Shown piece by piece: positions 9,896-58,439 of a stretch of DNA of 64,000 nucleotides; the stretch's first letter is position 1; each line of letters starts with the position of its first letter. The DNA lies in assembly GCF_000150275.1 (NCBI RefSeq), contig NW_002060960.1, positions 820,469-884,468 of the forward strand, read 5' to 3'. The translations under genes were made by a program, and so were the position numbers. Below the pieces are notes generated by a model. It had not been told where the DNA came from and ran no database searches. It worked only from the letters and a program-made list of their open reading frames with translations. The DNA is from Trichoplax adhaerens (taxonomy: Eukaryota; Animalia; Placozoa).

Positions 9896-11023
9896 TTAGG
9901 TAATAGCTGATAATAATCTTATCATTTGAAACTTACTTATCCGTAATGAGAAAGTTTGATCAGCACGATCTGCTTCATTACATCGGCTGATGTAACGTCG
10001 TAAAGGTAAAAAAAAGGAATGTAAAGGTTCACGAAAACGTTGAATATAATTAATATGAATGACAGGGCTGGTAATACCGGCTATTAACATTGCCAAATTT
10101 TGTATAATAAAGCAGATACTGGTAATATTTTTGTGAAAGTGTTGATTGCCCAACACAGTCATAGAAATAGAAATTAGCCATGTTACATTAAGTAAAAATT
10201 GAAGTAGAGATAGTTTACGAAGCATTTTGATAATATCTTTTTTTCGTTGGAACCCTGCATGAAATGATGAGTTCTGTTTCTCTAGATGGTTGGTAATGGT
10301 AGAATTTGTCATAGATGAGATAGAGATAGTGCTGCTAAGGTGGACTGATATTCTGTAATGGCAGTAAGTCGTGATAATTGCAGGTAACACAACTATTAAA
10401 GAGCATGAAATGAGTAAAAAACTTTGCTGTGTTCGATCTACTGTTAGTAGATCGCACAAATGGAAAATGGATTGTTGATTAACATTCGATTTCGCTGATG
10501 GAATAGCCCAAACTACACCAATACACCACAAAAGGATTAAAACTAATATAACCTGCCGATTTGCAAGGCGTCGACCATGGACTTCGGAATGTTTAACTTT
10601 TTGATAGCGAGCAATGCTAATAAATATTAAACTACCATTTATAACTACATTAGCCGTAATAGCAAGAGGAATCAAGAAACCGCATACGGTATAACTGACC
10701 CAAGGTATTAAAGTAATAGAACGATATTGCAATAGTGTTATAAAGTCTGCAAGCGACAACGTGGTGGCTAATAAGATATTAGCTATAGCAAGGTTTGCTA
10801 AAGCAAAAAATACAGGTATTGTAGTATCAGCTTTATATTTAATAACATAAATGATAAAACTGTTCAAAAAGCAGCTTATTAAACCAACAGTGCTATCAGC
10901 CAATAATTTGCACTGAAAAAAAATTAGCGGAATAGGCATTTCTAAAATTGTCGATGTTGAATTTGCATCGTAGTCATCGCTTAATTCCGTTGTGTTCAAG
11001 CAAAATGTTGAATTAAAGGCCAT
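9896..11023 (-). CDS. Intronless rhodopsin-class 7TM GPCR (cluster member 1, most divergent)
   Basis: Long ORF (first ATG 11023, aaaATGG), 7 hydrophobic segments, N-terminal N-glycan sequons, TM2 NLAIAN, TM3 CGF..P...SIARY, TM4 W, ECL2 Cys, TM5 P, TM7 SPVIH, helix-8 RFREP. Confidence 0.92.
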   Translation of the reverse strand: MAFNSTFCLNTTELSDDYDANSTSTILEMPIPLIFFQCKLLADSTVGLISCFLNSFIIYVIKYKADTTIPVFFALANLAIANILLATTLSLADFITLLQYRSITLIPWVSYTVCGFLIPLAITANVVINGSLIFISIARYQKVKHSEVHGRRLANRQVILVLILLWCIGVVWAIPSAKSNVNQQSIFHLCDLLTVDRTQQSFLLISCSLIVVLPAIITTYCHYRISVHLSSTISISSMTNSTITNHLEKQNSSFHAGFQRKKDIIKMLRKLSLLQFLLNVTWLISISMTVLGNQHFHKNITSICFIIQNLAMLIAGITSPVIHINYIQRFREPLHSFFLPLRRYISRCNEADRADQTFSLRISKFQMIRLLSAIT

Positions 11024-12988
11024 TTTATCCAATAGATTACTTGGTACTAAACAAATATTTTATTGCTTAGCTTGCTAATAAAAGTCGGCTCAAGTTTTCC
11101 ATTAACCATTCGAGCTATCCCTGAGCTTGTAACTAAATGAATTGATATTAAAGAATTTTACGAGCAATCATTACACAAGTTTACAATTATTTAAAATTGC
11201 TTACTACTGACACTTCTCCACAAAACCATTTCAAAAAAATTCTATATGAATAACATAAAATTGGAATATTCCAATCATAAGTCGCCACTGCCTCAAAATT
11301 AATTCATTAATCGACGTCATTGCGAAACTAAATTACGTAGTCATAAACATCAAGACATCATTTTATCGGTGTCTTTTCATCAGTAATATAGATTTAATAC
11401 CTGTCAACGATAATCAAACGAATTATTTACAAGGCAGTTAGCAATTCAATTGACATTCTACGTGTATGAAAATTTCGATTTTGGGTTGGTTGCAGTATTA
11501 ATATCGCAGCTTTAATGACTTAAATAAAGCTCACAAAAGAATCTGTTTCTGTGTCAGTAAGAATTCTATTTCATGAAATTAAATGACTGCTTAAATTTAC
11601 TGAATTCAATGATGTATCATTTAAAAGGAATCAATTAATTTTACATTATCATTAGAATAATATTTAACTTCTTGAATTAATAAATCTAGCCTTAAGCTGC
11701 CTTTCATCACTAGAAAAATACGACCAATTTTTGTATCAATCAGCTTTAGTTATTCACAGAAAGCGGTAGCAAAATTTATTCAATATAATTCAATAAATGT
11801 CTAGCTTACTAAACAAAAGGAAATTAATTCATATAATAACATTGTCCACTTATTGAAGGAAATAAAGATAAACCCGTGGTAGCATTTACTCAAAATAATT
11901 GAACCTTGAGAAGCAAATCCAAAAAATGTAATATTTCTTATTACCTACGTAATAAAAGATCTTCTGCTAAATATTCGCTAATAAACACATATCAACAAAA
12001 CAATTAGATTTTCATGCAAGCCCAGGGATAACATCTATCTAAAATATGGTAGCTTTGTTACAACTAATATTTCATAAAAGAATCCATTGTTTTATAAAGT
12101 AAAGTTTTTCATCGAACTTTTACCTATGGAAATCGCTATGTACTCTTACTTACAAAAGCAATTCTGAAGTAAATAAATTTCAAAGGTAGTATTTTACTTA
12201 ACGCATTCATATCCGGTCTAGAGCATTAGTAACTTCCCCATCATATAATTATTGTCCTCGCAATTTCTTGAGTAAATCGGTAAATTTTTTCAATCATAGC
12301 TGTCCAGCTACTTGAAGTTAATAAAATAATAATTTTAATTAACTGAGGTTACGCTGTCATTTAAAAATTATCATATGGATCAGCATTATTTGTCCAATAA
12401 GTTATAGAAATTATCTGATTATAATTTGCTTATCAGATGAGTGCATCAAAAATGCAGATAGTTTCATTTTGGTGATAAAAGTAAAAGATGGCCATAAATT
12501 ATAGCATCTGAGTCTTATAGAAATAGATTAAATTTTCTGAAAGTACTCGTTCAGATATATTCGAACATATGAAAGGGAGACATTTTATGCATTTCAAGCC
12601 CTTAATGAAGTTTAAGATCAATAAAATGAGTTTTCATCGATTTTCAGGAAGATGTAGAAGGAATTTACGATGGGGCAGCCGGATATCAATTTTACTAGGA
12701 ACAGATGAAAGTCTGTAGTCCTTTGTTTATGAAAAATACAGTATCCAAGGATTGTAAATTTTTGCGTTACTATAGCGAATAGCATTATTTCATATCAATT
12801 ATAATCATGAAAGTAAAATTTCGAATCAAGCTGTCATAATCTTGAGTGGGCATAGGAAGAATGAAAACATTATGAAACCATAATGAAATCAGCTTTAGAA
12901 TTTCATTTTGATGTGGTCATTGTCCAGTTTTGTATTACGCAGTTCCATTATTTGAATCAGTTATCGTCATCTATTTTATCATGCATAC

Positions 12989-13542
12989 TGTGATATATAC
13001 CGATCACGAAATTCCAAATTTTAGAAAAATAAGGGCTTTATTGAATCTTATACAAAGATTAACTACACACAGCTCTACTCTAGCCGAATACTACTACTAA
13101 AGACTTCTACAACGAACTGACAGAATAATCTAAGGTTGCATGCTTTTATATTTTTCGTAGCATTCGCAGCTACAATCCGCATGGCAACCTTTTACCTTAT
13201 TTTACACATAGTTAAATTATTCTTAGTAAGACTATTCTACTGCGGACCATCATTAATCCGATATGGATACGACTACAGTATTTACGTAGACATTATTCAC
13301 ACCAGCCAAAGTACAATGAATTAACTATATCCTAATATATGATTTACAGTTCTATTTTTACCTATAACCTTATTAGTAACTCAACACCTTACTGTATATA
13401 TAGTCATCTGTACTCTAGCATAGAGTCTATACCACTACAGGATATAGTTATGGCTACCAAATATATCCTAGGATAAATATCTCCCGTACATTATACTACA
13501 CATGGCTAACAGTCTACAATCACAATACTAAGTTACATTGCA
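12989..13542 (-). mobile_element. Solo LTR family A, full length (554 bp)
   Basis: TGTGAT...ATTGCA ends; highly similar to 24459-25015; flanks CATAC/TATGC (3/5, possibly a decayed TSD); minus-strand AATAAA near 13037-13042. Confidence 0.85.
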
Positions 13543-16022
13543 TATGCTTATTATTATAATATGCATATTAATCGTAATAGAAGAAAAATCATCATGATAT
13601 TATTAAAATATTTCGACCACTTTATGTTTGATACCATCAACATCAAACTTACTAAAGTTTGCCTTCTTTGGCAATAGACACATTAACTTAAATTTGGTAT
13701 TTTATAAAACAACTTTGATTCATCAATGTCGAAGCAAGATCATAATAGCAGTTTATATATTATTTAATGTAAGAATATGAATATCACCAAAGGTAGAATT
13801 TCGATCTTAAGTTCTGCGACGGAAATAAATTTTGATCGACCTCTCTTACTCTAGAGCTTTTATTTATGAATCCTTATTTGGAAGTATTTCCTTCCTTTAT
13901 ATTTATGATTATTATCGATACCAAGTCTCGACCTCAAATTTAGATTTACAAGAAACCTATCAACTGATGGCATCTCTCAAAATGTATATATCGTTAAGTC
14001 TATAATTTTCGCATGAAACTTTTATTAAGCTATAATGTAGGAAGTGTCATAATGCTATTCAAGTATTACCATATAACTTTTCATCAGCAACAGAACTATA
14101 AAATTATATTTTGTAAGCAAGTTAAAAAGCTTAATAAACAGCGATAGGATGAGTGCGAGTAAATATTTTTCTACAGGCGATAATCAAGGGATGTTAGGTG
14201 AAAATGTGAATAAAAATATACTAAAACATAGCTGTAAAATTTCAATTATTTGGTATAGTATTGACATGGAAATCTATTTCGGACATTCATATAATTTATG
14301 TTATCTTTATTTCCAGTATAAGACACTTTCGTGGAGTTAAGGTAACATCTATTGTTAGGATCGGAATAAAAAATATTCAGCTTAATATAATTAATGCCTA
14401 ACGTCTAATAGGCAAAATGATATATTGTTATCACTATTTCTTAATAAGGCTACTAAAGCCGAATGTAACAATTTATATAAAGCCCCAGCGCAAATGTCAA
14501 AGATGGCAACAAAGCAAGATCATTACGGTTTTTTATATCTAATGTGAATAATGCTTGATTTAGTCTCTATCTAAATACAGTCCGGATATTAAATTTCAAA
14601 TATACCTTTCATGCAATTAATGATAACTAAAAAAGTTCATAATATCAACGAGTAATATGCTAATTATTGCTCCTGAGTACTACTATAGAAGTCATCATGA
14701 GTGGGAATAATGGAAAAGTTTAATGTAATTTATATTCTGATGACCATTAAATAAATGAATTGAAAGGTATTACTATGCTAGCTTGATACTGCATAATGAC
14801 TAATATTTAGCCTTTATCATGTTTGTTGCATGTTGTAACGGTCACATATCACAAAGGTCTTCTTGGCGAATTAGATATACTCGATAAATACTTCATTGTT
14901 TGAGTGAAATTAAAATGCTACTGCTATGGCTACCTCGCTACAAATAATATCAAGTAATTGAAGACGGTATTAAAAAAATTTGACCTTTTTATCATACCTT
15001 TTAAATAATTTAATATATCATTGTTATTGACGTAAAGTTGCTACTTCCATTATTCTAAGATGTACAATCTATTTTTGCAGTGTTAATATCATTTCATTAT
15101 CATAATTTCGAAAGTAATTATCTGACAGATTGTCAGAATTTAAACTCTGCGACTATGAAACATGCAGTATAAGTCTATAAGTAACGACTGACTTAAAACG
15201 CTCTTTTAATAAGCGTTAAGCACACCCTTTAAAGTACCGTAAAGATAAAACTTTTATTAGCATAGACATTTTCATAACTTTTCACCATGCAACTCTACTC
15301 AAATATTCCTGTTTACATAGGAACTGTCCAATTTGTAAACGACTACAGTATTATTATGAAACCTTATTAGGAGAGACATCTCGACCTGAGATGCTCCTTA
15401 CATTGCTTTTCTATCAGTAAGTATTTTTAATCTATTACTCACACTTAATCTCAATCTAAGTACGTATGTTGTCTAGTTCAACTATCATTAGCTAGAGCTT
15501 AAACCATTACACTACTATACACATAACAACAATCAATACCAAGTATCTAGTAAACTATCACAAATAATATCCTCGTTAAGGTATTACTTATCTTACCTAC
15601 CATTACAAATATGGATATTGCCCCTATTGGCTATTACCGTACTATTACACTATCCTAACGGTAAGGTAACACCGTAAAATAGATTAATATTATCTTGTCT
15701 ATCTCATGACAGCAAGACCATCACTAGCTATAAATAATTCATTAGATTTTAGTTAAATTAGCTGAATAACATCTTCATAATTAAAAATTGCACATATTAG
15801 TGTTACTGTTGGTCTATGCTTTGGGTGGATAAGATAGTAATTTTTAATTCTTATTTTAGACTTATAGAATTTACTGTGAAAATAAATACAGGAAACGCAG
15901 AATCTATCCATGTTTTAGTTACTACAATAATAAGGTAGCTATGCAATCATAATTGATGATTTTTAGTTAGCATTCAACTTTTGGTGTTAATACTTATAAA
16001 GCATTCTAGGTTACAATTACAA

Positions 16023-17042
16023 TCAAGATCTTTGTTTAAACTGACAACATTGGCGTATGTTAAAGCAATATAGCTCTAGCGGACGTCGAAATTTTTTAAT
16101 CTTGACTATATACAGTATTGGGCCATTAAGGCAAGCCATAACTGTAGAAATATATTGTAGTGTAAAACTGAGTCCTACTACATAGGGATTCCATTTTCGA
16201 GCATAACCAATTTTTGTGCTGTATGAACCGACGAACGAAAGAAAGTAAAAGGTAAATTGCAACACTGTTAATAGTCGCAGCATTTGAAGAGTCTCCAATA
16301 CAAGTTGATTCGGTTGTATATTAATCAACAGCGGTTGAACACGAGCTGTTCGCATTGATCTACCATAAAACTGATGTTGATGGCTTCTTAATTTAACCAT
16401 TAAAATGAGATGAAATACTAAAGTAATAGCGAAAGGAACAAGGATATTAAGACCACTTAAAATTAATACCCAACTTCTACCATTTTGCGATACTGCATAG
16501 GCTGTACACATATTTCTAACGGTGCTTTTTGGCATTAAAAGAAATGATGGAGGATAATTATAAAGGATACCTATAATCCAGATACAAAGCAAAATCACTG
16601 ACGATTTCACTCGCGATATCTGCCGCGTTATATTTGCTGTTCCTGTTAATACGTAATATCGTTCATAAGCAATAAAAGCCAGCGTACCATTAGCTGCGAC
16701 TATAGCAGTAATAGACATTGGTATAATAAAACCACACAAAAAATACTTTATTATTTCTGAGCGATACTGAGAAGGAGAATTAAAATCTATTAACATCATC
16801 AGTGTCATCAATGGATAAAATATTGCTAACATAAGATTAGAAACAGCTAGATTAGTTAATGCATAGTAAGATGATTTTCTCTCTCTTTTTTGATGATAGA
16901 TTACACAAATAACATATAGGTTAGCCAAAATTCCTAGTAAACTCATTGCCAAAGCGATGCTGATCGTAAGATGGAGGATAATAACGGGAAAGGGTGGCGA
17001 GATAAAATTAACGGTAGTAAAGCTAGTTGTATTTTCTTCCAT
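16023..17042 (-). CDS. Intronless rhodopsin-class GPCR (cluster member 2)
   Basis: ORF, ATG 17042; LANLY, NLAVSN, CGFIIP, ERY, GPILY, KKFRRP; TGA stop. Confidence 0.93.
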   Translation of the reverse strand: MEENTTSFTTVNFISPPFPVIILHLTISIALAMSLLGILANLYVICVIYHQKRERKSSYYALTNLAVSNLMLAIFYPLMTLMMLIDFNSPSQYRSEIIKYFLCGFIIPMSITAIVAANGTLAFIAYERYYVLTGTANITRQISRVKSSVILLCIWIIGILYNYPPSFLLMPKSTVRNMCTAYAVSQNGRSWVLILSGLNILVPFAITLVFHLILMVKLRSHQHQFYGRSMRTARVQPLLINIQPNQLVLETLQMLRLLTVLQFTFYFLSFVGSYSTKIGYARKWNPYVVGLSFTLQYISTVMACLNGPILYIVKIKKFRRPLELYCFNIRQCCQFKQRS

Positions 17043-18210: not shown

Positions 18211-18693
18211 TTTAACTCTTTGCAATTGTAAAGGGGTTAGCAACAGTGACAGTGATAGGGCAGTATGAAATCTAACGCCATCAGCGATACAAAAATCTAT
18301 ATAGTCTATTCTGATAAAATTTAGAATTCTATTAGATTCAAGATTTTTCAAAAATCTATATCGTGATCTGTTTACTAAGATAGGTTTTTGTTTACTGACG
18401 GATAATATTAGTTACTCGTTATTATGATAACAAGAAAACTTTCATTGCTTACGATTACAGAGATAAAATATTCGACGGAGATTTTTATAATAGCAAAACT
18501 CATTCATCTAAGCTACATCATAGCAGGGATAGGACTTATCCACCACCTTTGGAAATATTCTTCAATATGAAGTAATCTAATAAAAAAGAGTTTATCGTTT
18601 CGTAGTTATAAAGCAGCTAACGATACTAGTTTATGTCAATTGAAATTGTTTATAACTGTTTTAGACCGTTGAATTCCATGATATATACGTCGG

Positions 18694-21958: not shown

Positions 21959-24458
21959 TAAATGAATAAATTGAAATGCATTACTAAGTTAGCTTGCTGC
22001 TTGCTATGGACTAATTTTTAAGAATCTGCCGTGTTCATCTCATGTTTTTAAATATTACATATCATAATAATCTGGTTCTATAACGATAAATAGCAAATGA
22101 AGTCGAGTGATTTGACTTGATGACACTTGGTAGTTGATATTCTGAAAGCTAATGAAACCAATAAATATTCTTTGCGCAGCCAGGAATCTTATCATTGTTT
22201 AAAAGACTACAATCGCCGTTAATTATAAGAACGATATCGCTAAAATGTACGAGAAACTAAATAATATTTTTGTGAATATATCCATTAGAATAGGAACACA
22301 GAAAATTGAAAGCGATCGGACTAGCTGCTATGAATGTCAGACGCTCAATAGATTCTCACATCAAACAGTAGCTTAAAATCCGAAAATTTATAATACGATA
22401 GCGACTTCTTATGAACATTAATTCAACTGAAAAAATTATCTTAAAACTTATAGAATAGAGTGGATTTAGATATGCATTACTAACAATTTTCTTGCTTTCA
22501 TTTCCTTCGTGGTAACTAGCTAGACACGATAACCTATAAATAACAAATTAAGTATACCTATCAACTGCACTAAATGCTAATTAAAAAATTAGAACACTTT
22601 AAATGTACCAATGTTATTCAGATCATTAGCACGAACAATGATTTACTATTTGTTCGCAAACCCTTTCACCATGAATTTATGAATATAGTTCATGTTGTTT
22701 TAATAATTCTATAATTACAAACTCATTTCACTTAACTAGCAATCTTTAGTAAATGTGGTATCAACCTAATTAAATTACTGCCGTCATCACTAATTTCGAT
22801 TCTGAAGGGCAAAATTAAATCAAGAGTAAAGCTAGCCTTTTAAATTAATTTTTATCCAGGAATTCGGTCAAGCGCTTTATAAGAAAACAATAAAAGTTTT
22901 TATTAAGACAATGATTTACTATGTGACGTTAAAATTGGATTACTTTGAGCACAATAGCATTTTTTAATGTTGTACTCTATTATTAGGCTTTAGTATTTTA
23001 GTTTGTACTTCTAAATACGATATACTGTACTCTTAGTAAAATTAATTTCCACTATACTATTGTAAAGCTCCATGTATGTATAATCTACATTTAACATTTT
23101 CCACGGCGGAAATCTCGTTATACGGTACTCAAATCTGATTGTATTGTAGAACTACCCTAAAATATATATAAGATACTCTTATTACTAAATGAACTTAAAA
23201 AATAAATTCCTTGTGTACTTCCTATATTATAAAAGCTATCTTCGTGCACCTATCTCGTTATTTAGTTCTGCTATTTACACGGTAAGATTGTGCGCTTTAT
23301 CACTTCTACATTACTTTAGCTATTCAGCTTAGTCGCATCATCATATACGCTAAAAATTTTATACGGTTTTCCTTCTCGCACTGAATGCAATAAAGATTAG
23401 TGTTAAACTAAATTATTCTCTTACAATTTCTTACAATTATGACAGACACAATCTCTTGAAACATCACAAATACGATTCGAAACATTTACAGTCGTCGACT
23501 ATTTGAACTATCCCTTAAGTAATTAATTCAGTCATTGTTACTCGGTCCTAAATATAAAATAATAATTAAAATTGAATGAATTTACGGTGGTTTTCGAAAT
23601 AACATAACGTACATTTAGGATAAAAAGGGTACTATTTACTAATTCCAGCTAAATTAATCTCTTTTTTAGTGTAACATAGTATTAACTTTCAACTCGTAGA
23701 TAGGTGCATTAAGCTAAAACAGCAAATTTAAGTCATTTATTTTTAATTAATGTTAATTTATGCCTTTATGTATATATACATTTTTACGGTTGAAAATTAT
23801 GGCTTAATCTTTTATTATGGGTTTGTAATTTGTGCTCGAATCAAAGTTTAACCACGACTTCAATAAAGATCATACACGCTAGAACACCAATATACATAGA
23901 TATATCGTTAGATATCGCTTCAAAATTTCAATGTTTGTCGATATTATGTTTTTTTTCTTTGGCCTTATTAATGCAAATAGTTAGCTCTTGTTACGGTGCA
24001 ACTTCAATACACCTGTCGTAACATATTCTTTATAAGAGAATTTATCTAGGATTGTGTTAATATTAATTTTCTCTATAAAATTTTACCTATTTTTAATAGA
24101 TAACTACATAATAGTGTAATATTATCTACGAACTGATAATAATTAATACTCGTTTTTATTTTCTATAAATTGGCTGATTTTTCAATAGTTTAATTTTCTG
24201 TAGTATATAGCAGTTTCTAGTTGCAAATCTAGATTGGAGCAATCCTGTGTAGGGAATTATTCATATACTATTTAATTAGGCTATATTAAGGGTAACTTTA
24301 AAACCTACCAAGAGTAATATAGAGGAATGCCAAATTTCTCTAGATAGAAATTAATTACTGTATTGAAACTGTTTGATCGATCGTTTGTTTATATAATGTT
24401 ACCTCGGGCTAGTAATAATTTTACAATCTATCATTTACAACTAAGCCAAGAGGCCTAT

Positions 24459-25015
24459 AGTGATATATACCGATCACAAGATTCCAAATTTTAGAAAAAT
24501 CTGGGCTTTATTGAATCTTATACAAAGATTAACTGCACACAGCTCTACTCTAGCCGAATACTACTACTAAAGACTTCTAAAACGAACTAACAGAATAATC
24601 TAAAGTTGTATGCTTTTATACTTTTCGTAGCATTCGCAGCTACAATCCGCATGGCAACCTTTTACCTTATTTTACACGTAGTAAAATTATTCTTAGTAAG
24701 ACTATTCTACTGCGGACCATCATTAATCCGATATGGATACGACTACAATATTTATGTAGACATTATTCACACCAGCCAAAGTACAGTACAATGAATTAAA
24801 CATGTCCTAATATATGATTTACAGTTCTATTTTTACCTATAACCTTATTAGTAACTCAACACCTTACTGTATATTGTCATCTGTACTCTAGCATAGAGTC
24901 TCTACCACTACAGTCTATAGTTACAGCTACCAAATATCTCTTATGATAAATATCTACCGTACATTATACTACACATGGCTAACAGTCTACAATCACAATA
25001 CTAAGTTACATTACA
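24459..25015 (-). mobile_element. Solo LTR family A, full length (557 bp)
   Basis: (A)GTGAT...ATTACA ends, TSD CCTAT/CTTAT (4/5), near-identical to 12989-13542. Confidence 0.88.
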
Positions 25016-25205
25016 CTTATATACTAAATTAAGAAAGGGAGCCGTCTAGGTGAAAACGAAAATTTTAGATTCTAATAGAAAGCTGCTACGCAATCGAATA
25101 ATAAATCCACTTTGAAAATCTGAACAATAATTGTTTTTCAGTTACAAGTTAATTCTCTAGCAAGGAACAATTTTTCAAGAGGAAAACAGTTCTCTCGATG
25201 ATCAA

Positions 25206-26240
25206 TTAAGCCATTAAAGTAACCGATATCTTCGATGTTGATAAACTGCCACAGCGCCTGCAAGCAGACCAATAATGTTGTAATGGATACTGGAACTTAG
25301 ATAACCTGACGATGTAAAGAATTGGACTTTGAAGCCCTGTAGTAATAAGGGCTGCATATTGAATGCAAAATGAATAGCCTATTAGATATTTATTCCAATT
25401 TAAAGTGTATCCAATCGCTGAGATATAGAAAGTTAACAACCACAGTAAGCAGCAGAATAATTGCAAGAAAGCCAATTCACGTATTAACGCTATTGTTAAT
25501 TGTAATCGCCGTCTGACGGCAATACAACTCCACATGGCGGTGGATGTGGTAACATAGTTCTGAAACGGTAAAACAGAATTTTTACTTCGTTCATGAAGTT
25601 TTAATTTCTTGGCAATTATGAAATGGCTGATAAACGTGACACTAAATGGAATAAAAATATTAAGTGTAGCAAAGATTAGCATTACAGTGCGGATCAGTGT
25701 AACTTTGGTAAAATAAGTGCAGATTGTTAAAATAGAACTTCCATCAATAACCAAAATAGAACGTGGCCACTGTTGTAAAATCCCTATTATTCAAGGTATT
25801 AAAAAAATGGAAATGGCTTTACAACGATTTTGCCGACGACCAAATATTAGTGTTCTCTTTAAATACCGATAGTTTTCAACTGAAATAATGGCCAAAGTAA
25901 TATTCCCCGCTATTACTGCAACTAAAGACAACGGTAGTAGAAAACCACATAAAACACTTGTCAATGATTTGGAATGGTATGATTCAGAATTATAAGTCCA
26001 TAAAATACAAATCGGTGGAATGATATAAAAGACAGCCACAACTAGATTAGCTATAGCCAAATTGCATAATCCGTAATGCGTTGACGATCTCATATCCTTG
26101 TTATAGTAAATAATAATTAAGATATAGGAATTTGCTATTACACTCATAAGACTTAAAATAGCGCCAACAGTCACCATAATTTGTACAGTAATAATAGCCA
26201 TTGGTAATTCGCCGGCGTAGGTGAAATTAGTAAAATTCAT
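25206..26240 (-). pseudogene. Full-length cluster GPCR (member 3) interrupted by one in-frame TGA at the conserved TM4 Trp
   Basis: ORFs 25791-26240 and 25206-25754 are in the same frame. The junction reads FLIP*IIGILQQWPRSILVI versus paralog LIGLWIIGILQHWPRSIIV. 344 aa if TGA (25793-25791) were TGG. Confidence 0.88.
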
Positions 26241-26777
26241 TATTTACGATTCACCTGTCTTTGAACAAATTCAGCCCTAAAAAATTTATCTGTCTGGTGT
26301 AGAATAAATTAATGTTATGAATGTATGAGATTAATAACAATATCAATTCGACTTCCATGGTAACTAGCTACGTTAAAGTAAATCATTCCATTCTACAAGT
26401 CCGGATATAAAACTGACTGAACGATGTCGTCAACATGGAAAAGGAAAGACATTGTTTTATTTATCAATGATGGCATTTAAGTTAGGATGAATCACATGAA
26501 TAATTCTATTCAATTCCTGCTGAAAATAATGGATTAAATGTCTATTAATATGTTGTAAATTATCACTTGGTTAGCTTTATGAATAGTAACTTATGACCTC
26601 TAACTGAAAGATGAGCATTGGCTATCGGCTCATTTATTTTCCTATTCATAATGCATAATTTTTAGGTGTTTTAATTTTCTTTCTTCGATTATGTCTAATA
26701 CTTGGTTTTATTACAAACATTCCTATTTAATTCAGCAACGTAATGAAAACTTAATAAGCCCTCGAATCTTTTGGGAA

Positions 26778-27600: not shown

Positions 27601-27799
27601 TTCAACTTTGATTGATTACAACTTAGACGCTATAAAAATTTTACGTTAACTGATTTCAGTCATCTTGAAGAAGTTAAGAAGTACCAAATTCATAATTATG
27701 AGTTAACGTCCAACGCTTTATATTTGTAATATTATTTAATTATGAACTACCATCCTATGCCGTATATTTATAATATCAAAAAGAAAGTAATATTTTGAG

Positions 27800-40687: not shown

Positions 40688-41716
40688 TTAATTTTTAAAA
40701 CATGGGCAGTATGATATTGCACCTGATAAGTAACAAATCAAAGGTTTCCTAAATTTCTTAATACATATAATGTGTAGAATTGGGCTGTGAAGTCCAATAG
40801 CTAAAATCGCAATATATTGTATTGCAAGAGCAAATCCAACCAAGTAGGCATTAGACTTTAAACTGTAACCTATGACAGTAAAATTAAAGCCCGTAAACCA
40901 CAATAAGCAACATATAAATTGCACTATAATTAAATGTTTTAACATTTTATTTATATGTAGTAGGCGTTGATTCCATCGTCCATCCAGACCTAATGTTTTA
41001 AACTTAAGTTGCTTTAACGTAATTGCAGATATGTAAAACCGATAATTACGCCTTAATTTCTTAGCAATCTTAATATAGCAGATCAACATAATTAGAAATG
41101 GAATAACTATATTTAAGCTGGAAATAATCAATGTTATGTTTCGTGATGCTAATGAATTAGTGTAGAGCGCGCACATATTGTTAATAGAGCTGTCCTTGAG
41201 GACAATAAGAGATCTTGGCCAATATTGCAAAATTCCAATTAACCAGAAACCTGACAAAATTGTTATAGTTTTACGACGTGCTTGTCGACGATTTGAATCC
41301 GTAAAAGTATGATTTGATAACTTGCAATAATTTTGTAGAGAAATGAAAGCCAGGGTGCCATTAGCTGTAAACAAAGCCACTACTGATAAAGGTATAATAA
41401 AACCACACAGTATCCCTGTCATAATTTTAGAGTACTGCAACGTTAAATCTTGGGTTAAAAGTGCAAAGACGAGTGGAAGAGGGTAAAAAATACCCACAAA
41501 AATATTAGCTATCGCTAAGTTTATTAAGCTATAGTATGAGGAAGATCTTAAATGTTTATTTTTGTAAATAATAAGCAATATATATAAGTTGGCTGGTAGA
41601 CTAAAAAAAGTTAAAGAGTATGCAATGATGATAGAACACCAGATTGTTATCAACGGTAATTTAAAAGTATCACTATAGTAATTACTGGCAAGATTTTCGA
41701 TGCTGCCATCATCCAT
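40688..41716 (-). CDS. Intronless rhodopsin-class GPCR (member 5)
   Basis: 342-aa ATG ORF; NLAIAN, CGFIIP, QNY, QYWPR, SPILH, KKFRKP. Confidence 0.93.
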   Translation of the reverse strand: MDDGSIENLASNYYSDTFKLPLITIWCSIIIAYSLTFFSLPANLYILLIIYKNKHLRSSSYYSLINLAIANIFVGIFYPLPLVFALLTQDLTLQYSKIMTGILCGFIIPLSVVALFTANGTLAFISLQNYCKLSNHTFTDSNRRQARRKTITILSGFWLIGILQYWPRSLIVLKDSSINNMCALYTNSLASRNITLIISSLNIVIPFLIMLICYIKIAKKLRRNYRFYISAITLKQLKFKTLGLDGRWNQRLLHINKMLKHLIIVQFICCLLWFTGFNFTVIGYSLKSNAYLVGFALAIQYIAILAIGLHSPILHIICIKKFRKPLICYLSGAISYCPCFKN

Positions 41717-44899: not shown

Positions 44900-45934
44900 T
44901 TATATTAAAGCCGAATCGATTTTCTTGAACCTTATCCATTTAGGCCAACATTGAATAGATAGTAAATGAGATTCTAATGGCTGTCGGAATTTTCTTAAAC
45001 ACAGTATGTATAATATTGGTCCATGAAGTCCAGTTGCTACTAATGCTATATATGAAATTGCATATGCAAAGCCCACGACATAAGAATTTAACTTTGTAGC
45101 ATAGCCTATGACAAAAGTAAGCATGCTGATTACCCCTGTAGTGCAGCATATAAACTGAATCTGTGCTACTCGTCGTAACATTTTAATTGCGTTATTAAGA
45201 CGTTGTGTTTGGCGCCCACCTTGATTGAAAGATCGAAATTTAAGTTGCCGTAGAATAGCTGCCGAAATGAAAAATCGATGACGTTGTTTCAATGTCTTTG
45301 CAATTTTAACATGGCAAATTAACATAATTATAAATGGATAAGTGTGAATGAAAGTAGCGGCTACCAGCATAATATTTCTCATTAAATCATCCTGAGTAAA
45401 TAATGTACAAATATTAGGTATGGAACTTCTATCTAATACAATAATCGAACGAGGCCAATGTTGGAGAATACCAATTATCCATAAACCAATTAAAATGGTC
45501 AATACTTTACGACGATGTAATTGTCGACGAGGATATGCATGTCGAACTATAGTATAATACTTTTCTATAGCGATAAATGCCAATGAACCATTAGCGGCCT
45601 GCAAAGCCACTACGGAAGAAGGTAGAATAAAGCAACATAAAACTAATTTTATAGCTTCGGAATGCTGCAACGGTGAATTATAGGTAATAAGGACAAAAAG
45701 TGGAGTTATTGGAAACGTAAAGGCGACAACAAGATTAGCAATTGATAGATTCGCTAGTCCATAAAATGACGCCGATCTTAAATCTTTATTAATAAAGATG
45801 ACATATAAGATATAGCTATTCGCTAGTATGCTAATGATACTGAGTATTCCAGCAATGACCATACAAATTTGGATCGTTATTATCGGCAAGGGCGTAATTT
45901 CATCACTGGAAGTATTAGCTTGAGTTGAATTCAT
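44900..45934 (-). CDS. Intronless rhodopsin-class GPCR (member 6)
   Basis: 344-aa ATG ORF; NLSIAN, EKY, QHWPR, GPILY, RKFRQP. Confidence 0.93.
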   Translation of the reverse strand: MNSTQANTSSDEITPLPIITIQICMVIAGILSIISILANSYILYVIFINKDLRSASFYGLANLSIANLVVAFTFPITPLFVLITYNSPLQHSEAIKLVLCCFILPSSVVALQAANGSLAFIAIEKYYTIVRHAYPRRQLHRRKVLTILIGLWIIGILQHWPRSIIVLDRSSIPNICTLFTQDDLMRNIMLVAATFIHTYPFIIMLICHVKIAKTLKQRHRFFISAAILRQLKFRSFNQGGRQTQRLNNAIKMLRRVAQIQFICCTTGVISMLTFVIGYATKLNSYVVGFAYAISYIALVATGLHGPILYILCLRKFRQPLESHLLSIQCWPKWIRFKKIDSALI

Positions 45935-49911: not shown

Positions 49912-50901
49912 TTAAATGGAACTGCTCGCTGAAATGCAAATTTGTAATGGCCGTCTAAATTTTTTTAACCAGATAATATGCAGAAGTGGAGCGTGAAGCC
50001 CACTCGCTATAATACATAAGTAGTGCAATATAAATGCAAATCCTACAAGATAGGGATTCAATTTTGCAGCATAACCAGAAACGGTAACATGGAAGCCCAA
50101 CAGCCACAACATGCAGCAAGCAAATTGAACTAAGGCTATATAGCGTAACATTTTAATTGATTTTTTAAAACGTAGCCCAGAGTTTTCGGTAGAATGGAAC
50201 GAAGGAACATCCAGTTGCCTAAATATAATTCTCGAAGTAAAGAAACGTTCATGTTTCTTCAATTCCCACGTAATTCTAGCATTACAGATTAGTGTAATAA
50301 CTAATGGTGTAACGTTAATAAATGTGCCTGAAATTAACAACGAGTTTCGAATAAAATCCAAACTAGAATAAAGTCTGCAAAATGCATGAATTGAACTTTC
50401 TTCTATGGAAATTAAAGACCGAGGCCATTGTATAAGTGATACAATCCATAAAGCCATTAAAATTGTGAATACTTTCTGGCGCTGCATTCGGCGGCGTGAA
50501 CGAGAACGATAGGTTATAGTATAACACTTTTCTATGGCAATAAACGTTAATGTACCATTAATTACTAAAAACGCAGACATAGGTAATGGCAGAATAAAGC
50601 CGCACAAGATTAGTTTCAGAGTCGGAGAATTTCGAAGTGGTGAATTATATGTGATCAGGACTAAGATTGGAATCAGAGGATATAAAACAGCAACGACCAA
50701 GTTAGCAAAAGATAGATTCATTAATCCATAAAATGAAGCTGATCTCATTTCTTTATCTTTATAAATTATATATATGATGTAAGTATTGACAATAATACTG
50801 ATCGCGGTAATTATTCCGCCAAGAATAACGGTAATTATGATAGTTAATAAAGGTAGAAGTAGATTATCTACATGCGTTGCGTTAGTATCATTTAGGGTCA
50901 T
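49912..50901 (-). CDS. Intronless rhodopsin-class GPCR (member 7)
   Basis: 329-aa ATG ORF; NLSFAN, CGFILP, EKC, QWPR, APLLH, KKFRRP. Confidence 0.93.
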   Translation of the reverse strand: MTLNDTNATHVDNLLLPLLTIIITVILGGIITAISIIVNTYIIYIIYKDKEMRSASFYGLMNLSFANLVVAVLYPLIPILVLITYNSPLRNSPTLKLILCGFILPLPMSAFLVINGTLTFIAIEKCYTITYRSRSRRRMQRQKVFTILMALWIVSLIQWPRSLISIEESSIHAFCRLYSSLDFIRNSLLISGTFINVTPLVITLICNARITWELKKHERFFTSRIIFRQLDVPSFHSTENSGLRFKKSIKMLRYIALVQFACCMLWLLGFHVTVSGYAAKLNPYLVGFAFILHYLCIIASGLHAPLLHIIWLKKFRRPLQICISASSSI

Positions 50902-52177
50902 ACTTTCAGGATTATTATCACAAAATTTACTGGTAAAATGATAAAGAGATCTCAGTATCGCTTAGGAATGACCTAGTAAAGATCGCTTACTTTTTAAATT
51001 ACTTTAATTTTCTTTACATTTTATGAAATATAACTGAATTCTTAAACGATTGTCATTAGAAACTTGAATCCTTTCATATCACGAACAAAACTCAAACAGC
51101 TAGTTTATCAAATATGAATTGAAAAAAATTTATAAGACAGGGATTATTGTTTATAATATTAAGCAGCGGATAATAAGTTTTTTGCATTTTAATAAATGGA
51201 CTGTAATATAGGTTAATTTAATAGTCAAGAGTTTCTATGGCATTTCATGATATAAATAACCAGTACCATTCAGTAATATTAAGTGTCATTACTGTCTGAT
51301 AAATGTCAAGATCGAAGCTTGATCTTTGTTTATAGCAACCGGATTATGTACATTTGTCTAACTCTTCTAAAGAAGCCAGTACATCGATTACTGTGGTTTA
51401 ATTTGGCTTACTTTTACTTGTAAGGTATTATACGATTATGCAGACTAAAACGGGTTCAGTATACATTTACAGGTAGAAGCAAATACCGTTAACTCTTGGT
51501 AAAAAACTGATTTTCAGGCTATTTGTTGCCTATTAATCATTTAACTGTACACTTTACTATCAAATTATACTCTCACTTTCATTTTCTATCTAGTAGCTTT
51601 GTACTAGTATTATTTCTGTTATTTTTTCATGCTAGATTTATAAAATAATACTATCCTTGTAACATGACGCTGCTTTCTAGCTCGATATTGATATATTATT
51701 CAATAACACACTCTTTGGCTATCATTAACGTGAATATGAATCGAAAACAATTTATAAGACAGGAATTATTAATTTTAATATTAAGTAGCGGATAATAGTC
51801 TTTGCATTCTAATAAATGGAATGTAATATAGGATAATTTAATAGTCAAAGAGTTTCTATGGCATGTCATGATAAAAATAACCAGCACCGGTCAGTAACGT
51901 TAAATGTCATCACTCAGGCTAATAAATGTCGAGATCGATGCTCAATCTTGACATATAGTAACCGGATTATGTACATTTGTCTAGCTCTTCTATAGAAGCC
52001 AGTACTTCGATTACAGTGATTTAATTTGGCTTACTTTTAGTTCTAAGGTAATTATACGACTATACAATCTAAAACAGGCTCAGTATATTGTACAGGTAGA
52101 GGTAGAAGTAAATACCGTTAATTCTTGGTAAAAAAACTGATTTTCAGACCATTTATCGCCTATTAATAATTTAACTT

Positions 52178-52957
52178 TGTAATGAAATGAAAAGTGTAGA
52201 GATCAAGCTACGAAACTTTAACAAACTTTGATTCTACTTTCGTTGCACTCCAGTCGACTTAACGCTAATACTTTGACACCAAATAAAATTTGGGGAAATA
52301 ACCGAACAACAATTTATTTCAAAACAAAAATGGAGAGAAGTATAAACCGAACAACCGCACAAATACTTAGCTTTAAGTATTATTAAAATAAATGACAGAC
52401 TTAAAAACTGTCAACGACCAAACAACCTTTCAAAAACAAGAACGTTTTAACTTACGACAATTCGACCCCGAAGGCCTTTTAAATTCAACAAGTTCTTCAA
52501 ATAAAATCTTCTTCTACTCTCCCTCTAAATTTTCTAATTGCACTATCATTTATAGGCTTCGTAGAGCCGTCAGAGGTATTTAAAACTAAACATTTGCTAA
52601 CCAGTCGCTCTTAAGATCCGTTTTACAAAACTACTTTGCACCATTTAAGAAAACAAAAATCATTCAAAGTTCAGACACAATTTACCCTACGATTCCCTTA
52701 CAAAACACTATAAAAATAACAAGCTAACTATAAAAATACATCAAACTTCATTTCTAACATAATTTCTATCATTAATACACTATAAAAGTCTAAAAATCAA
52801 CCTTTAAACATCAAGATTTAGTCATAAAAACAACATTCTAACTACCTAACAATCAACACAACCTCTGCCAATTTCCATCTTATTTTCTATTTTCCTCACT
52901 AAATCTCCTAATGTGACTTCAAGTCACGTCATAAAATTCCAAAGTTTCAAATTGATA
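52178..52957 (+). mobile_element. Possible 5' portion of an inserted retroelement (or low-quality contig tail)
   Basis: Present only in the first copy of the duplicated block. Starts TGTAATG, has TTTGACA then PBS-like TTTGGGGAAATAACCG (52289-52304), then strongly A/C-skewed, G-poor sequence up to the gap. Confidence 0.4.
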
Positions 52958-53007
52958 NNNNNNNNNNNNNNNNNNNNNNNNNNNNNNNNNNNNNNNNNNN
53001 NNNNNNN
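52958..53007. other. Assembly gap (50 N)
   Basis: Run of N. Confidence 1.
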
Positions 53008-53779
53008 CTAAGGCTATATAGCGTAACATTTTAATTGATTTTTTAAAACGTAGCCCAGAGTTTTCGGTAGAATGGAACGAAGGAACATCCAGTTGTCTAA
53101 ATATAATTCTCGAAGTAAAGAAACGTTCATGTTTCTTCAATTCCCACGTAATTCTAGCATTACAGATTAGTGTAATAACTAATGGTGTAACGTTAATAAA
53201 TGTGCCTGAAATTAACAACGAGTTTCGAATAAAATCCAAACTAGAATAAAGTCTGCAAAATGCATGAATTGAACTTTCTTCTATGGAAATTAAAGACCGA
53301 GGCCATTGTATAAGTGATATAATCCATAAAGCCATTAAAATTGTGAATACTTTCTGGCGCTGCATTCGGCGGCGTGAACGAGAACGATAGGTTATAGTAT
53401 AACACTTTTCTATGGCAATAAACGTTAATGTACCATTAATTACTAAAAACGCAGACATAGGTAATGGCAGAATAAAGCCGCACAAGATTAGTTTCAGAGT
53501 CGGAGAATTTCGAAGTGGTGAATTATATGTGATCAGGACTAAGATTGGAACCAGAGGATATAAAACAGCAACGACCAAGTTAGCAAAAGATAGATTCATT
53601 AATCCATAAAATGAAGCTGATCTCATTTCTTTATCTTTATAAATTATATATATGATGTAAGTATTAACAATAATACTGATCGCGGTAATTATTCCGCCAA
53701 GAATAACGGTAATTATGATAGTTAATAAAGGTAGAAGTAGATTATCTACATGCGTTGCGTTAGTATCATTTAGGGTCAT
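53008..53779 (-). CDS. Gap-truncated near-identical copy of GPCR member 7 (likely allelic haplotype, or very recent duplicate)
   Basis: Two amino-acid differences (LIPI/LVPI, WIVS/WIIS) over about 257 codons; 3' end lost in Ns. Confidence 0.7.
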
Positions 53780-53989
53780 ACTTTCAGGATTATTATCACA
53801 AAATTTACTGGTAAAATGATAAAGAGATCTCAGTATCGCTTAGGAATGACCTAGTAAAGATCGCTTACTTTTTAAATTACTTTAATTTTCTTTACATTTT
53901 ATGAAATATAACTGAATTCTTAAACGATTGTCATTAGAAACTTGAATCCTTTCATATCACGAACAAAACTCAAACAGCTAGTTTATCAA

Positions 53990-55240
53990 ATATGAATTGA
54001 AAAAAATTTATAAGACAGGGATTATTGTTTAAATATTAAGCAGCGGATAATAGTTTTTTGCATTTTAATAAATGGACTGTAATATAGGTTAATTTAATAG
54101 TCAAGAGTTTCTATGGCATTTCATGATATAAATAACCAGTACCATTCAGTAATATTAAGTGTCATTACTGTCTGATAAATGTCAAGATCGATGCTTGATC
54201 TTTGTTTATAGCAACCGGATTATGTACATTTGTCTAACTCTTCTAAAGAAGCCAGTACATCGATTACTGTGGTTTAATTTGGCTTACTTTTACTTGTAAG
54301 GTATTATACGATTATGCAGACTAAAACGGGTTCAGTATACATTTACAGGTAGAAGCAAATACCGTTAACTCTTGGTAAAAAACTGATTTTCAGGCTATTT
54401 GTTGCCTATTAATCATTTAACTGTACACTTTACTATCAAATTATACTCTCACTTTCATTTTCTATCTAGTAGCTTTGTACTAGTATTATTTCTGTTATTT
54501 TTTCATGCTAGATTTATAAAATAATACTATCCTTGTAACATGACGCTGCTTTCTAGCTCGATATTGATATATTATTCAATAACACACTCTTTGGCTATCA
54601 TTAACGTGAATATGAATCGAAAACAATTTATAAGACAGGAATTATTAATTTTAATATTAAGTAGCGGATAATAGTCTTTGCATTCTAATAAATGGAATGT
54701 AATATAGGATAATTTAATAGTCAAAGAGTTTCTATGGCATGTCATGATAAAAATAACCAGCACCGGTCAGTAACGTTAAATGTCATCACTCAGGCTAATA
54801 AATGTCGAGATCGATGCTCAATCTTGACATATAGTAACCGGATTATGTACATTTGTCTAGCTCTTCTATAGAAGCCAGTACTTCGATTACAGTGATTTAA
54901 TTTGGCTTACTTTTAGTTCTAAGGTAATTATACGACTATACAATCTAAAACAGGCTCAGTATATTGTACAGGTAGAGGTAGAAGTAAATACCGTTAATTC
55001 TTGGTAAAAAAACAGATTTTCAGACCATTTATCGCCTATTAATAATTTAACTTTACTTACTGTAATGTCAAATTATACTCTTAATTTTGTTTTCTATCTG
55101 GTAGCTTTATACTTGTATTATTTCTGTTATTTTTAATATAAGATTTATAAAATAATACTTTCATTATAAAATGAGGCTGCTTTCTAGTTCGATATTGATA
55201 TATCGTTCAATATTACACTCCATGAATATCATTAATGCGA
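53990..55240. repeat. Tandem duplication of an about 620-bp unit upstream of GPCR member 7 (also at 51110-52178)
   Basis: AATATGAAT.GAAAA.AATTTATAAGACAGG recurs at about 53990 and 54609; units colinear with scattered differences. Confidence 0.88.
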
Positions 55241-57413: not shown

Positions 57414-58439
57414 TTAAGCTACTTTTAAAATTGACCAAAAAGCAATAAAGCAATTTTGTAGTGGTTGGCGAAATCTTTTTATATAAAAAATATAGAGGAT
57501 TGGACCATATAAGCCTGTCAAGACTCCACAGACATACATAAATGCGTACGATAAGCCGATAGTAAATGGGCTAGCTTTGTATGCATACCCTAAAACCGTT
57601 GCATAAAAACCAAATAGCCAGCAGAAAGAACATAAAAACTGACTCAAAGCAACATGTCGTAGAATCTTCACCGCGTTGTTTAATTTTTGATTTGACACGT
57701 TCGTTTCACGAAAGTTCTGAAGTTTAAGATCTTTCAAAATAGCAGCAGAAATAAAGAATCGATGACGTTGTTTCAATTTCCACACAATTTTAGTATGGCA
57801 AATGCACATAATAACGAATGGAATTGCAATTCCAGCAGCAGATAATGTTAGCATAATCCTGCGAGATACACTATTATCTGTATAAACGGTGCAAATGCCT
57901 TGTATGTAGCTCATATCCATAACTAGAACAGTACGAGGCCAATGTTGAATCATTGTTATAAACCATAAGCCGACTAATACTGCAAATATTTTACTTTTTT
58001 TGACCTTTCTTTTCAACGTACAATCTTGATTTAATGTATAATACTTCTCTACAGCAATAAATGCTAAAGTGCTATTAGCTACCATTAATGATACAATAGC
58101 AATTGGTACAGTAACACTACACATGATATACGTTATCCATACAGAATGTTTCAAAGGTGAATTATACGTGATTAGCATAAAAATTGGCGTAAAGGGATAG
58201 AAAGCGGCGACCAATAAATTGGCGATAGATACATTAATTAATCCGTAGTACGTTCCTGATCTCATTTCTTTATTGCCATAAATAATATACAGCACATAAC
58301 CATTCGCAAGAAAGCTAATCATACTTAGAAAGGTACCAATAACAGCCGTAATTTGAATTGATGTTAATGGCACAGGATTAGTTCTGTTGTAGGAGGATAT
58401 AAGAAAAATTGATTGATTTGCTGTTGATTTTCCAAGCAT
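57414..58439 (-). CDS. Intronless rhodopsin-class GPCR (member 8)
   Basis: 341-aa ATG ORF; NVSIAN, EKY, QHWPR, GPILY, KRFRQP. Confidence 0.93.
   Translation of the reverse strand: MLGKSTANQSIFLISSYNRTNPVPLTSIQITAVIGTFLSMISFLANGYVLYIIYGNKEMRSGTYYGLINVSIANLLVAAFYPFTPIFMLITYNSPLKHSVWITYIMCSVTVPIAIVSLMVANSTLAFIAVEKYYTLNQDCTLKRKVKKSKIFAVLVGLWFITMIQHWPRTVLVMDMSYIQGICTVYTDNSVSRRIMLTLSAAGIAIPFVIMCICHTKIVWKLKQRHRFFISAAILKDLKLQNFRETNVSNQKLNNAVKILRHVALSQFLCSFCWLFGFYATVLGYAYKASPFTIGLSYAFMYVCGVLTGLYGPILYIFYIKRFRQPLQNCFIAFWSILKVA

Follow-up and report, generated by a model that had tools for sequence, protein, structure and literature searches.

The window, a 64,000-nt stretch of the Trichoplax adhaerens genome, carries eight distinct single-exon 7tm_1 genes arranged in tandem, all on the minus strand. 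These are g1 (positions 57414 to 58439; 341 amino acids [aa]), g2 (49912 to 50901; 329 aa), g3 (44900 to 45934; 344 aa), g4 (40688 to 41716; 342 aa), g5 (31330 to 32352; 340 aa), g6 (25206 to 26240; 344 codons), g7 (16023 to 17042; 339 aa), and g8 (9896 to 11023; 375 aa), the last being the most divergent member. Nine long minus-strand open reading frames (ORFs) are present, and the exception among them is an unrelated Galactosyl_T gene inside the array (ORF at 36531 to 37709, gene at 36531 to 37625, minus strand; Pfam score of 123 bits; 364 aa in strain H2). Beyond the array, the scanned Trichoplax genome (105.6 Mb, 1414 contigs) holds one unlinked close paralogue, located at 373 kb on contig C1413. 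About four more distant members of the clade lie at other places. The array is an old tandem set of orphan rhodopsin-family (class A) G-protein-coupled receptor (GPCR) genes.

We compared the window, which is of strain type H1, with contig NOWV01000115.1 of Trichoplax sp. H2; nucleotide identity was 99.1 to 99.2% over 40 kb, and all eight loci corresponded one to one. The g1 orthologue is of equal length and differs by three synonymous and three nonsynonymous changes, and g5 is 99% identical to RDD39990.1, a protein named “rhodopsin” by automatic annotation. The g4 frame is intact in H2, yet no gene is annotated there. An earlier note on this DNA had counted eight full-length members. Eight loci are indeed present, but only seven of the eight frames are intact in the window assembly, as g6 is interrupted by an in-frame TGA at codon 150 (Trp4.50; positions 25791 to 25793). 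The same codon is TGG in H2, where all eight frames are intact.

An apparent ninth copy, g2b (53008 to 53779, minus strand), comprises 772 nt from the 5′ end of a g2-like frame and is ended by an assembly gap (an N run at 52958 to 53007) across which the sequence is neither continuous nor in frame; the ORF at 52919 to 53779 loses its GPCR character at the gap. Positions 53008 to 55054 are a 99.6% copy of positions 50130 to 52178 (2049 bp). As this copy starts exactly at the gap edge and H2 has a single copy of the g2 region, we rejected g2b as a ninth gene. Almost certainly it is an artefact of the assembly, with duplication of an allele or during assembly as its most likely origin. Adjoining the gap is the 779-bp end of a young dispersed repeat (52179 to 52957), which occurs in at least 40 copies with 97 to 99% identity and has no match in the H2 region. 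This repeat probably caused the mis-join.

All eight loci scored above the 7tm_1 cut-off of 30.5 bits (48.2 to 77.6 bits), and g7 additionally had a weak Srx match (E = 4e-4) below the Pfam cut-off. The family profile matched over 400 class A receptors of solved structure, with E-values down to 5e-13, and favoured no particular subfamily (E-values were flat, from 1e-13 to 1e-9); the nearest were the OX1R/OX2R, squid rhodopsin, 5-HT2A, CCK-A, NPY-Y1, and NK1 receptors. An AlphaFold model of the g3 protein (pLDDT, 88.5; pTM, 0.87) has seven helices plus helix 8. With this model, Foldseek returned at least 500 matches, the best of those listed, led by orexin receptors, squid rhodopsin, and NK1R, all belonging to class A; most of their target-normalised TM-scores lay between 0.6 and 0.8. 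The class A identity proposed earlier is therefore borne out by both the profile scores and the predicted fold. The residues that the family shares with class A (PF00001) are those of the fold: N1.50, C3.25, W4.50, and P7.50 are each present in 12/12 core members and P5.50 in 10/12 (including all eight window genes), the ECL2 Cys that forms the disulfide with Cys3.25 is invariant, and the helix-8 Phe is kept. The genome has at least 147 further strong 7tm_1 loci for class A receptors, which resemble the family in that many of them lie in single-exon tandem clusters. Unlike the family, with its 48 to 78 bits, they score 112 to 179 bits and carry D2.50, (D/E)RY, CWxP, and NPxxY.

To number residues, we used three independent alignments: the family profile against solved structures, a hidden Markov model (HMM) built from canonical Trichoplax GPCRs, and hhalign. 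Residue placement was the same in all three for TM1 to TM5 and TM7, but the TM6 numbers depended on the alignment, with the family’s Gln falling at 6.41, 6.43, or 6.44 and a conserved Trp at 6.48, 6.50, or 6.51.

Class A activation is usually explained by a near-universal D2.50 with sodium, together with the DRY, PIF, CWxP, and NPxxY motifs and Y5.58. The family departs from class A at D2.50, S3.39, N/S7.45, N7.49, Y5.58, and P6.50 and, in six of the eight genes, at R3.50. Position 2.50 is Asn in all eight loci (NLAIAN, NLSIAN, NLAVSN, NLSFAN, or NVSIAN) and in 12/12 core-clade members. From g1 to g8, position 3.39 reads A, I, A, A, V, G, A, and I (A, V, I, G, or S across the 12 core members), and position 7.49, which is followed by Pro7.50, reads G, A, G, S, S, S, G, and S. 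The canonical N/S7.45 is T, A, I, M, or S across core members; the states at 7.49 were taken from multiple alignments, and the HMM mis-registers a few rows. No TM6 proline was present in the sequences or multiple alignments of any member, and DSSP assigns TM6 of the g3 model (residues 239 to 279) as an unbroken helix. At 5.58, His occupies six of the eight window genes (g2 has Asn and g4 Tyr) and 10/12 core members. Of the window genes, five keep Tyr7.53 and three have His at that position. The 3.49-to-3.51 motif is EKY in g1 and g3, EKC in g2, QNY in g4, DKY in g5, ENY in g6, ERY in g7, and ARY in g8. Position 3.50 is thus Lys in g1, g2, g3, and g5 and Asn, which cannot mimic Arg, in g4 and g6. 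The earlier description of Asn2.50, a non-Ser 3.39, a proline-free TM6, S/G/A7.49, and an Arg3.50 surviving only in the two left-most genes accordingly holds across the eight loci.

The same is true of two family-specific residues, Asn at 3.40 and a Gln in TM6, each of which is found in all eight genes. Two further motifs hold in modified form. Cys3.25 and Pro3.30 are invariant (Pro3.30 in 8/8 loci), but the wording CGFxxP given for them is absent from g1 (CSVTVP) and g3 (CCFILP). QxWPR, ascribed to the six distal genes, occurs in g1 (QHWPR), g3, g4 (QYWPR), and g5 and g6 (both QQWPR), but g2 has QWPR, one residue shorter; g7 lacks the motif. In the modelled g3 protein, the residues concerned are N67 (2.50), P105 (3.30), N115 (3.40), E124-K125-Y126, H208 (5.58), Q260 (TM6), and G305-P306 (7.49-7.50). 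At the sequence level, the residues of the sodium/water pocket and of the activation switches are nearly all replaced, and those of the fold are kept.

We aligned 184 other class A receptors in the same way as the family. The canonical states predominated, with D2.50 in 176/184, S3.39 in 159/184, R3.50 in 181/184, Tyr5.58 in 168/184, P6.50 in 164/172 aligned, and N7.49 in 164/171 aligned. Asn at 3.40 was found in none of the 184, nor was any combination of three or more of these losses. These figures bear on the view that the genes encode ordinary G-protein-coupled receptors, probably for peptides, that signal canonically and tolerate the substitutions, with Lys partly replacing Arg3.50 and Asn replacing Asp2.50. 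The retained fold-building residues and Pro7.50/Tyr7.53 fit this view, as do the G-alpha genes of the genome and the orexin/NPY/NK-type peptide receptors that form the closest nonfamily and structural matches. Single variants also occur in otherwise canonical Trichoplax receptors (EKY in L020; N2.50 with DSY in L019). However, at least seven switch positions are changed jointly and are fixed across the clade, three such losses did not coincide in any comparison receptor, and two members have Asn3.50 with no Arg mimic, so that we consider wholly ordinary signalling unlikely. The L006 branch combines the TM6 Gln with Ile3.40, and the covariation of this Gln with N3.40 is therefore not strict.

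Over the eight loci, H1 and H2 differ by 21 synonymous and 29 nonsynonymous changes (dN/dS = 0.40; P = 0.0017 versus neutrality). This indicates purifying selection on the family, although a ratio of 0.40, based on 50 substitutions, corresponds to moderate constraint only. None of the listed H1-H2 amino acid differences, inspected by eye, hits a signature residue. Among paralogs, dN/dS is at most about 0.15 to 0.4, with dS saturated, as against the value near 1 considered in the earlier note. Could the genes nevertheless be decaying relics on the way to becoming pseudogenes? The premature stop in g6, the missing annotation of g4 in H2, and Pfam scores that are low relative to those of the 147 other receptors of the genome would be expected in that case. 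The intact frames (7/8 here and 8/8 in H2), the departure from neutrality, and the invariance of the family-specific residues in partners that are at most 51% identical make decay highly improbable.

A search of 1.84 billion representative proteins returned only 13 matches at an E-value of ≤1e-30, all of them family-like and all either Trichoplax sp. H2 proteins or metagenome/SRA contigs. The next matches outside the family were ordinary peptide-receptor-like GPCRs of at most 122 bits, and no already characterised family with these motifs appeared among the strong matches. As the earlier note proposed, the family thus appears to be lineage specific, being restricted so far to placozoan-like sequences, for which the placozoan assignment is suggested by tree position and a GC content of 30%. 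In the tree, the clade is separated from other Trichoplax receptors with an SH-aLRT support of 98, and g6, g7, and g8 each have a partner of their own, a homologue whose source is much more divergent (P0002 for g7 and P0025 for g8). The divergent homologues P0002, P0024, and P0025 (≤51% identical) keep the signature residues. Within the array, paralogs are 25 to 47% identical, with saturated dS (>1.5).

This age structure weighs against the suggestion that the array is a chemosensory family shaped by birth and death. Lineage-specific chemoreceptor arrays (nematode Srx-type genes and vertebrate OR, TAAR, and V1R genes) likewise consist of single-exon tandem genes with lineage restriction and divergent motifs, and the same-strand layout, the moderate rather than strong constraint, and the strain-specific nonsense allele of g6 are in keeping with such a family. 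Independent GPCR duplications have also been described in placozoans (PMC6067683). The family differs from these arrays in being small, old, and stable, and it shows no significant similarity to them. It has only eight loci here, one-to-one orthologues between H1 and H2, and saturated paralogue dS; the sole young duplicate is an artefact. The paralogs are old, and three of them are each matched by a partner from a divergent lineage, so that the array is not one of chemoreceptors with rapid birth and death. These data do not support a birth-and-death layout or the chemosensory interpretation derived from it, and we hold that explanation to be quite improbable.

We instead think it probable that the genes form an old class A family that has kept the fold and replaced the switches, and whose members are working, sodium-insensitive receptors with an amide/hydroxyl core. 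Since selection maintains the genes, the members are presumably working ligand-binding 7TM receptors. The geometry of the sodium site is documented (PMC6037435), and each of the four positions that bind the ion or bridge to it through water (2.50, 3.39, 7.45, and 7.49) is changed, from which loss of the sodium site, and with it the sodium independence suggested earlier, can be soundly inferred. Side chains bearing amide or hydroxyl groups (N2.50, N3.40, the TM6 Gln, and S7.49) would then hold the helical core in place of sodium and ordered water, and the receptors would therefore be insensitive to sodium. TM6 would operate without a proline hinge. A bolder and less likely reading, offered tentatively, is that of a class A-derived receptor that does without the sodium/water pocket, the proline hinge of TM6, and, in six genes, Arg3.50, and that relies on a putative amide core of N2.50, N3.40, and Gln; with the Gln at or beside 6.44, the hydrophobic P-I-F connector would become P-N-Q.

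The GnRH receptor pairs N2.50 with D7.49 in a reciprocal swap and so provides, as a general-knowledge comparison, an example of Asn2.50 in a working receptor. Unlike that receptor, the family has no acidic residue left in its pocket because 7.49 is Ser, Gly, or Ala.

Coupling may differ within the family. The ERY/ARY members (g7, g8, and the unlinked paralogue) are probably still G-protein-coupled, and those with Lys or Asn at 3.50 probably couple weakly or by another route. In class A receptors, Arg3.50, Tyr5.58, Asn7.49, and the TM6 proline help form the G-protein-binding state, and their joint loss would suit a nonsignalling or atypical role, especially for the six K/N3.50 genes, as a decoy or scavenger, an arrestin-biased receptor, or an obligate partner or chaperone. 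The genome holds arrestin-fold genes as well as G-alpha genes, but the Pfam arrestin matches may be alpha-arrestin-like rather than visual or beta-arrestins. Moreover, most of the other changes are also seen in the ERY members, which makes the loss of R3.50 a late addition and not the core of the syndrome. We judge an atypical role for the family rather unlikely. Atypical chemokine receptors have an altered DRYLAIV motif and no G-protein signalling, and they generally keep D2.50, CWxP, and NPxxY. By general-knowledge comparison, they resemble the family in that a DRY change goes with loss of classical coupling; they differ in that the family changes the whole core, and the sequence relation between the two is that of class A only.

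What we present is a description, from sequence, of orphan receptors that form a divergent family, and the mechanism that we attach to them is a proposal. A clade under selection in which nearly all switches are replaced and the fold is kept amounts to a natural test of which residues are needed, and eight single-exon genes of about 1 kb each are a tractable set for deorphanisation, on which work in placozoans has already begun (bioRxiv 10.1101/2025.04.18.649542). Should these receptors signal normally, microswitches would be easier to replace than textbooks hold; should they not, the family would be an early-animal case of atypical 7TM signalling. If the amide-core reading is true, it would represent a distinct solution to activation or transducer coupling, with its origin in an animal phylum that was among the earliest to branch off.

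The window is AT-rich (30% GC), and all of its long ORFs lie on the minus strand. Eight distinct loci match Pfam 7tm_1 (class A GPCRs) at 48 to 78 bits (cut-off, 30.5). Numbered from right to left and with corrected ATG starts, these minus-strand genes are g1 (57414-58439), g2 (49912-50901), g3 (44900-45934), g4 (40688-41716), g5 (31330-32352), g6 (25206-26240), g7 (16023-17042), and g8 (9896-11023), each consisting of one unbroken frame. For comparison with the close strain Trichoplax sp. H2, we followed its contig NOWV01000115.1 gene by gene. About 40 kb aligned to the window (strain H1) at 99.1 to 99.2% identity, in coding and noncoding DNA alike, and the H2 protein RDD39990.1 is identical to one window protein at 336 of 340 positions. 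None of the window's six intact proteins had an exact match in a collection of 15 billion entries, from which records of this genome seem to be absent. The H2 annotation has single-exon products of identical lengths for seven of the eight loci. It calls no gene at the g4 locus, where the H2 sequence (L003; merged coordinates 14222-15250) nevertheless holds an intact 342-codon frame with four amino acid differences from H1. Codon 150 of g6, at the Trp4.50 position, is TGA in the window (25791-25793) and TGG in H2; aside from this codon, g6 differs from H2 by six nucleotides. Either the strain carries a null allele, or the TGA is a sequencing/base error.

The surroundings of these genes hold some further features. 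Between g4 and g5 lies a beta-1,3-galactosyltransferase-like gene (36531-37625, minus strand; Pfam Galactosyl_T, 123 bits), with one synonymous and five nonsynonymous differences between the strains. The DNA around g6 is repeat-rich: positions ∼23100-28800 and 33985-34429 give many short, reordered, repeated alignments to H2 (92 to 99.6% identity), and related copies occur at 12990-13542 and 4002-4150. In H2, a large ankyrin-repeat gene (L046:14136-17128; product of at least 1212 aa) is found downstream of g8.

An apparent ninth copy lies at an assembly gap between g1 and g2. In the ORF at 52919-53779, the GPCR frame breaks off at a run of Ns. Past the gap, 2049 bp (53008-55054) match 50130-52178 at 99.6% identity, and this copy starts exactly at the gap edge. 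H2 has a single copy of the g2 region and a g1-g2 spacing of 3.6 kb, versus 6.5 kb in the window. We therefore rejected the copy as a ninth gene. At its opposite edge, the gap adjoins a 779-bp segment (52179-52957) that has at least 40 genomic copies at 97 to 99% identity and, in the window-H2 alignment, is missing from the orthologous H2 locus. This segment is a young dispersed repeat and likely a transposon insertion, either recent or heterozygous, ∼1.3 kb upstream of g2. The simplest reading of the gap region is that two overlapping contigs were left unmerged at the repeat, itself perhaps a heterozygous insertion, and the six mismatches between the two copies would then be allelic. Direct repeats of 132 nt, spaced 623 bp apart and 87 to 100% identical, also occur upstream of g2 (51296-52050) and again in the artifact copy (54172-54926).

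For TM1 to TM5 and TM7, generic numbers came out the same in three independent alignments: the family profile was aligned to solved structures, the sequences were aligned to an HMM of 27 canonical Trichoplax receptors, and hhalign was run on canonical representatives. Against 5-HT2A, for example, the family's LANLAIAN lies over LMSLAIAD and its IAIEKY over ISLDRY, and counting backward through TM3 from 3.50 arrives at Cys3.25. All eight loci carry N2.50, P3.30, and N3.40. Position 3.39 is A, V, I, or G, and P7.50 is preceded by S, G, or A; their TM6 has no proline and an invariant Gln. Arg3.50 is found only in g7 (ERY) and g8 (ARY), with Lys in g1, g2, g3, and g5 and Asn in g4 and g6. The residue states that the earlier note gave for 2.50, 3.39, 3.40, 7.49, and TM6, as well as its observation that R3.50 survives in the two leftmost genes, were thus confirmed. 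Two changes go beyond its list: T, A, I, M, or S stands at 7.45, where N, S, or H is expected, and His replaces Tyr5.58 in 10 of the 12 core-clade members, among them six of the eight genes in the window. Every member retains N1.50, W4.50, P7.50, the disulfide pair, and the helix-8 Phe; P5.50 persists in 10 of the 12 core members and Y7.53 in the majority. The N3.40-x-T/S motif was considered as a glycosylation site and rejected, since it lies midway through TM3 and T3.42 belongs to the general class A consensus.

We then compared these states with those of 184 other class A receptors, comprising 135 nearest nonfamily representatives from a library of 1.84 billion proteins plus canonical and intermediate Trichoplax paralogues, all aligned in the same way as the family. 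The canonical residues were present in most of them: D2.50 in 176/184, S3.39 in 159/184, R3.50 in 181/184, Y5.58 in 168/184, P6.50 in 164/172 aligned receptors, and N7.49 in 164/171 aligned receptors. None of the 184 had Asn at 3.40, and in none were D2.50, P6.50, and N7.49 missing together, which places the residue pattern noted earlier beyond chance. Single deviations are scattered through the Trichoplax repertoire, as two otherwise canonical receptors each have switch changes: L020 (C1410:3426800-3428700) has EKY with D2.50, CWLP, and NPIIY, and L019 (C1411:5320700-5322500) combines N2.50 and DSY with CWLP and NPILY. Judged by these alignments, the hallmark of the family is the combination of changes and no single one of them.

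A word search with a single sequence gave only one match, and a profile word search gave four family matches before scores fell from 251 to 67 bits. Searching the genome (105.6 Mb, 1414 contigs) with g4 recovered, besides the eight loci and the artifact copy, an unlinked paralogue (L005, 35% identity) and weaker relatives. In an exhaustive profile search of the 1.84 billion representative proteins, only 13 reached an E value of ≤1e-30, namely, H2 orthologues and six metagenome/SRA assembly sequences (P0004 and P0023 to P0027); a seventh such sequence, P0002, came from the word search. Below these came standard receptors carrying D2.50, DRY, and NPxxY (≤122 bits), of which a mite protein is one example. 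In the IQ-TREE phylogeny, the family, the Trichoplax loci L005, L006, L007, and L010, and the divergent partners form one clade (SH-aLRT, 98). Together with the 13 proteins, this support indicates that the family proposed in the earlier note is real and lineage restricted.

Within the clade, g7 pairs with P0002 (support, 100), g8 with P0025 (99), and g6 with P0024 (92). The proteins of g7 and P0002 are 51% identical (dS, ∼1.7). The P0002 contig has a GC content of 30%, and its coding sequence shares 65% identity with g7. These divergent pairings imply that the paralogues are older than a deep split, which most simply lies within Placozoa, and that the signature residues have been conserved since that split. 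The outer branches L006, L007, and L010 are without D2.50 and the TM6 proline, have P3.30, and keep (D/E)R and S3.39, so the changes accumulated stepwise, with the loss of R3.50 (in one or more events) and the gain of QxWPR coming last.

Across the eight loci, the H1 and H2 strains are separated by 21 synonymous and 29 nonsynonymous changes (pS, 0.0113; pN, 0.0045; ratio, 0.40; P = 0.0017 by a binomial test against the neutral expectation), and inspection of the change lists revealed no amino acid change on a signature residue. Between paralogues, dN/dS is at most 0.15 to 0.4, values that are upper bounds only since dS is saturated. The GPCR genes of the window are constrained, but only moderately.

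The register of TM6 depends on the alignment. HMMER against 5-HT2A and hhalign both place the conserved Trp on W6.48 and the Gln at 6.41, which requires a three-residue upstream insertion. An ungapped alignment with squid rhodopsin gives Gln 6.43, Phe 6.44, and Trp 6.50, and the Trichoplax canonical HMM, gap-free for g2 from a shared KML motif, gives Gln 6.44 and Trp 6.51. A hand count from the KML Lys to Pro7.50 gave 55 residues in the family versus 54 in both the proline-bearing paralogue L011 and P0031. Trp at 6.50/6.51 thus takes one single-residue indel, versus two compensating indels for 6.48, which favors the former without being decisive. The AlphaFold2 model of g3 (80-row alignment; mean pLDDT, 88.5; pTM, 0.87) has seven helices and helix 8, with TM6 an unbroken helix (239-279). 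Its best Foldseek matches were orexin receptors, squid rhodopsin, NK1R, alpha-1A, opioid, and A2A, with none preferred. The symmetric TM6-TM7 hairpin of the model, with TM7 starting at 7.28, is also compatible with Gln at 6.43/6.44, and we lean toward this placement. If it holds, the hydrophobic P5.50-I3.40-F6.44 connector would have become P-N-Q, an attractive idea.

The DRY, NPxxY, Y5.58, and CWxP elements have established roles in class A activation. In this family, we infer that the sodium/water pocket (for its geometry, see PMC6037435) is gone and that TM6 operates without a hinge proline. Standard G-protein engagement by the six members with Lys or Asn at 3.50 seems unlikely, and the noncanonical mechanism suggested in the earlier note appears reasonable, if unproven. 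Its chemosensory birth-and-death reading, on the other hand, is weakened and has lost its main support, in view of the array's small size, age, and stability. Placozoan GPCR studies describe rich lineage-specific repertoires, with deorphanization ongoing; the clade and its motifs are not described in the literature that we consulted, and a literature search with the H2 accessions gave no match. Overall, the data reveal an old, selectively maintained class A clade with a fixed set of noncanonical residues, found only in placozoan-like sequences. Since both G-alpha and arrestin-fold genes were found in the genome, its members may signal through either route.
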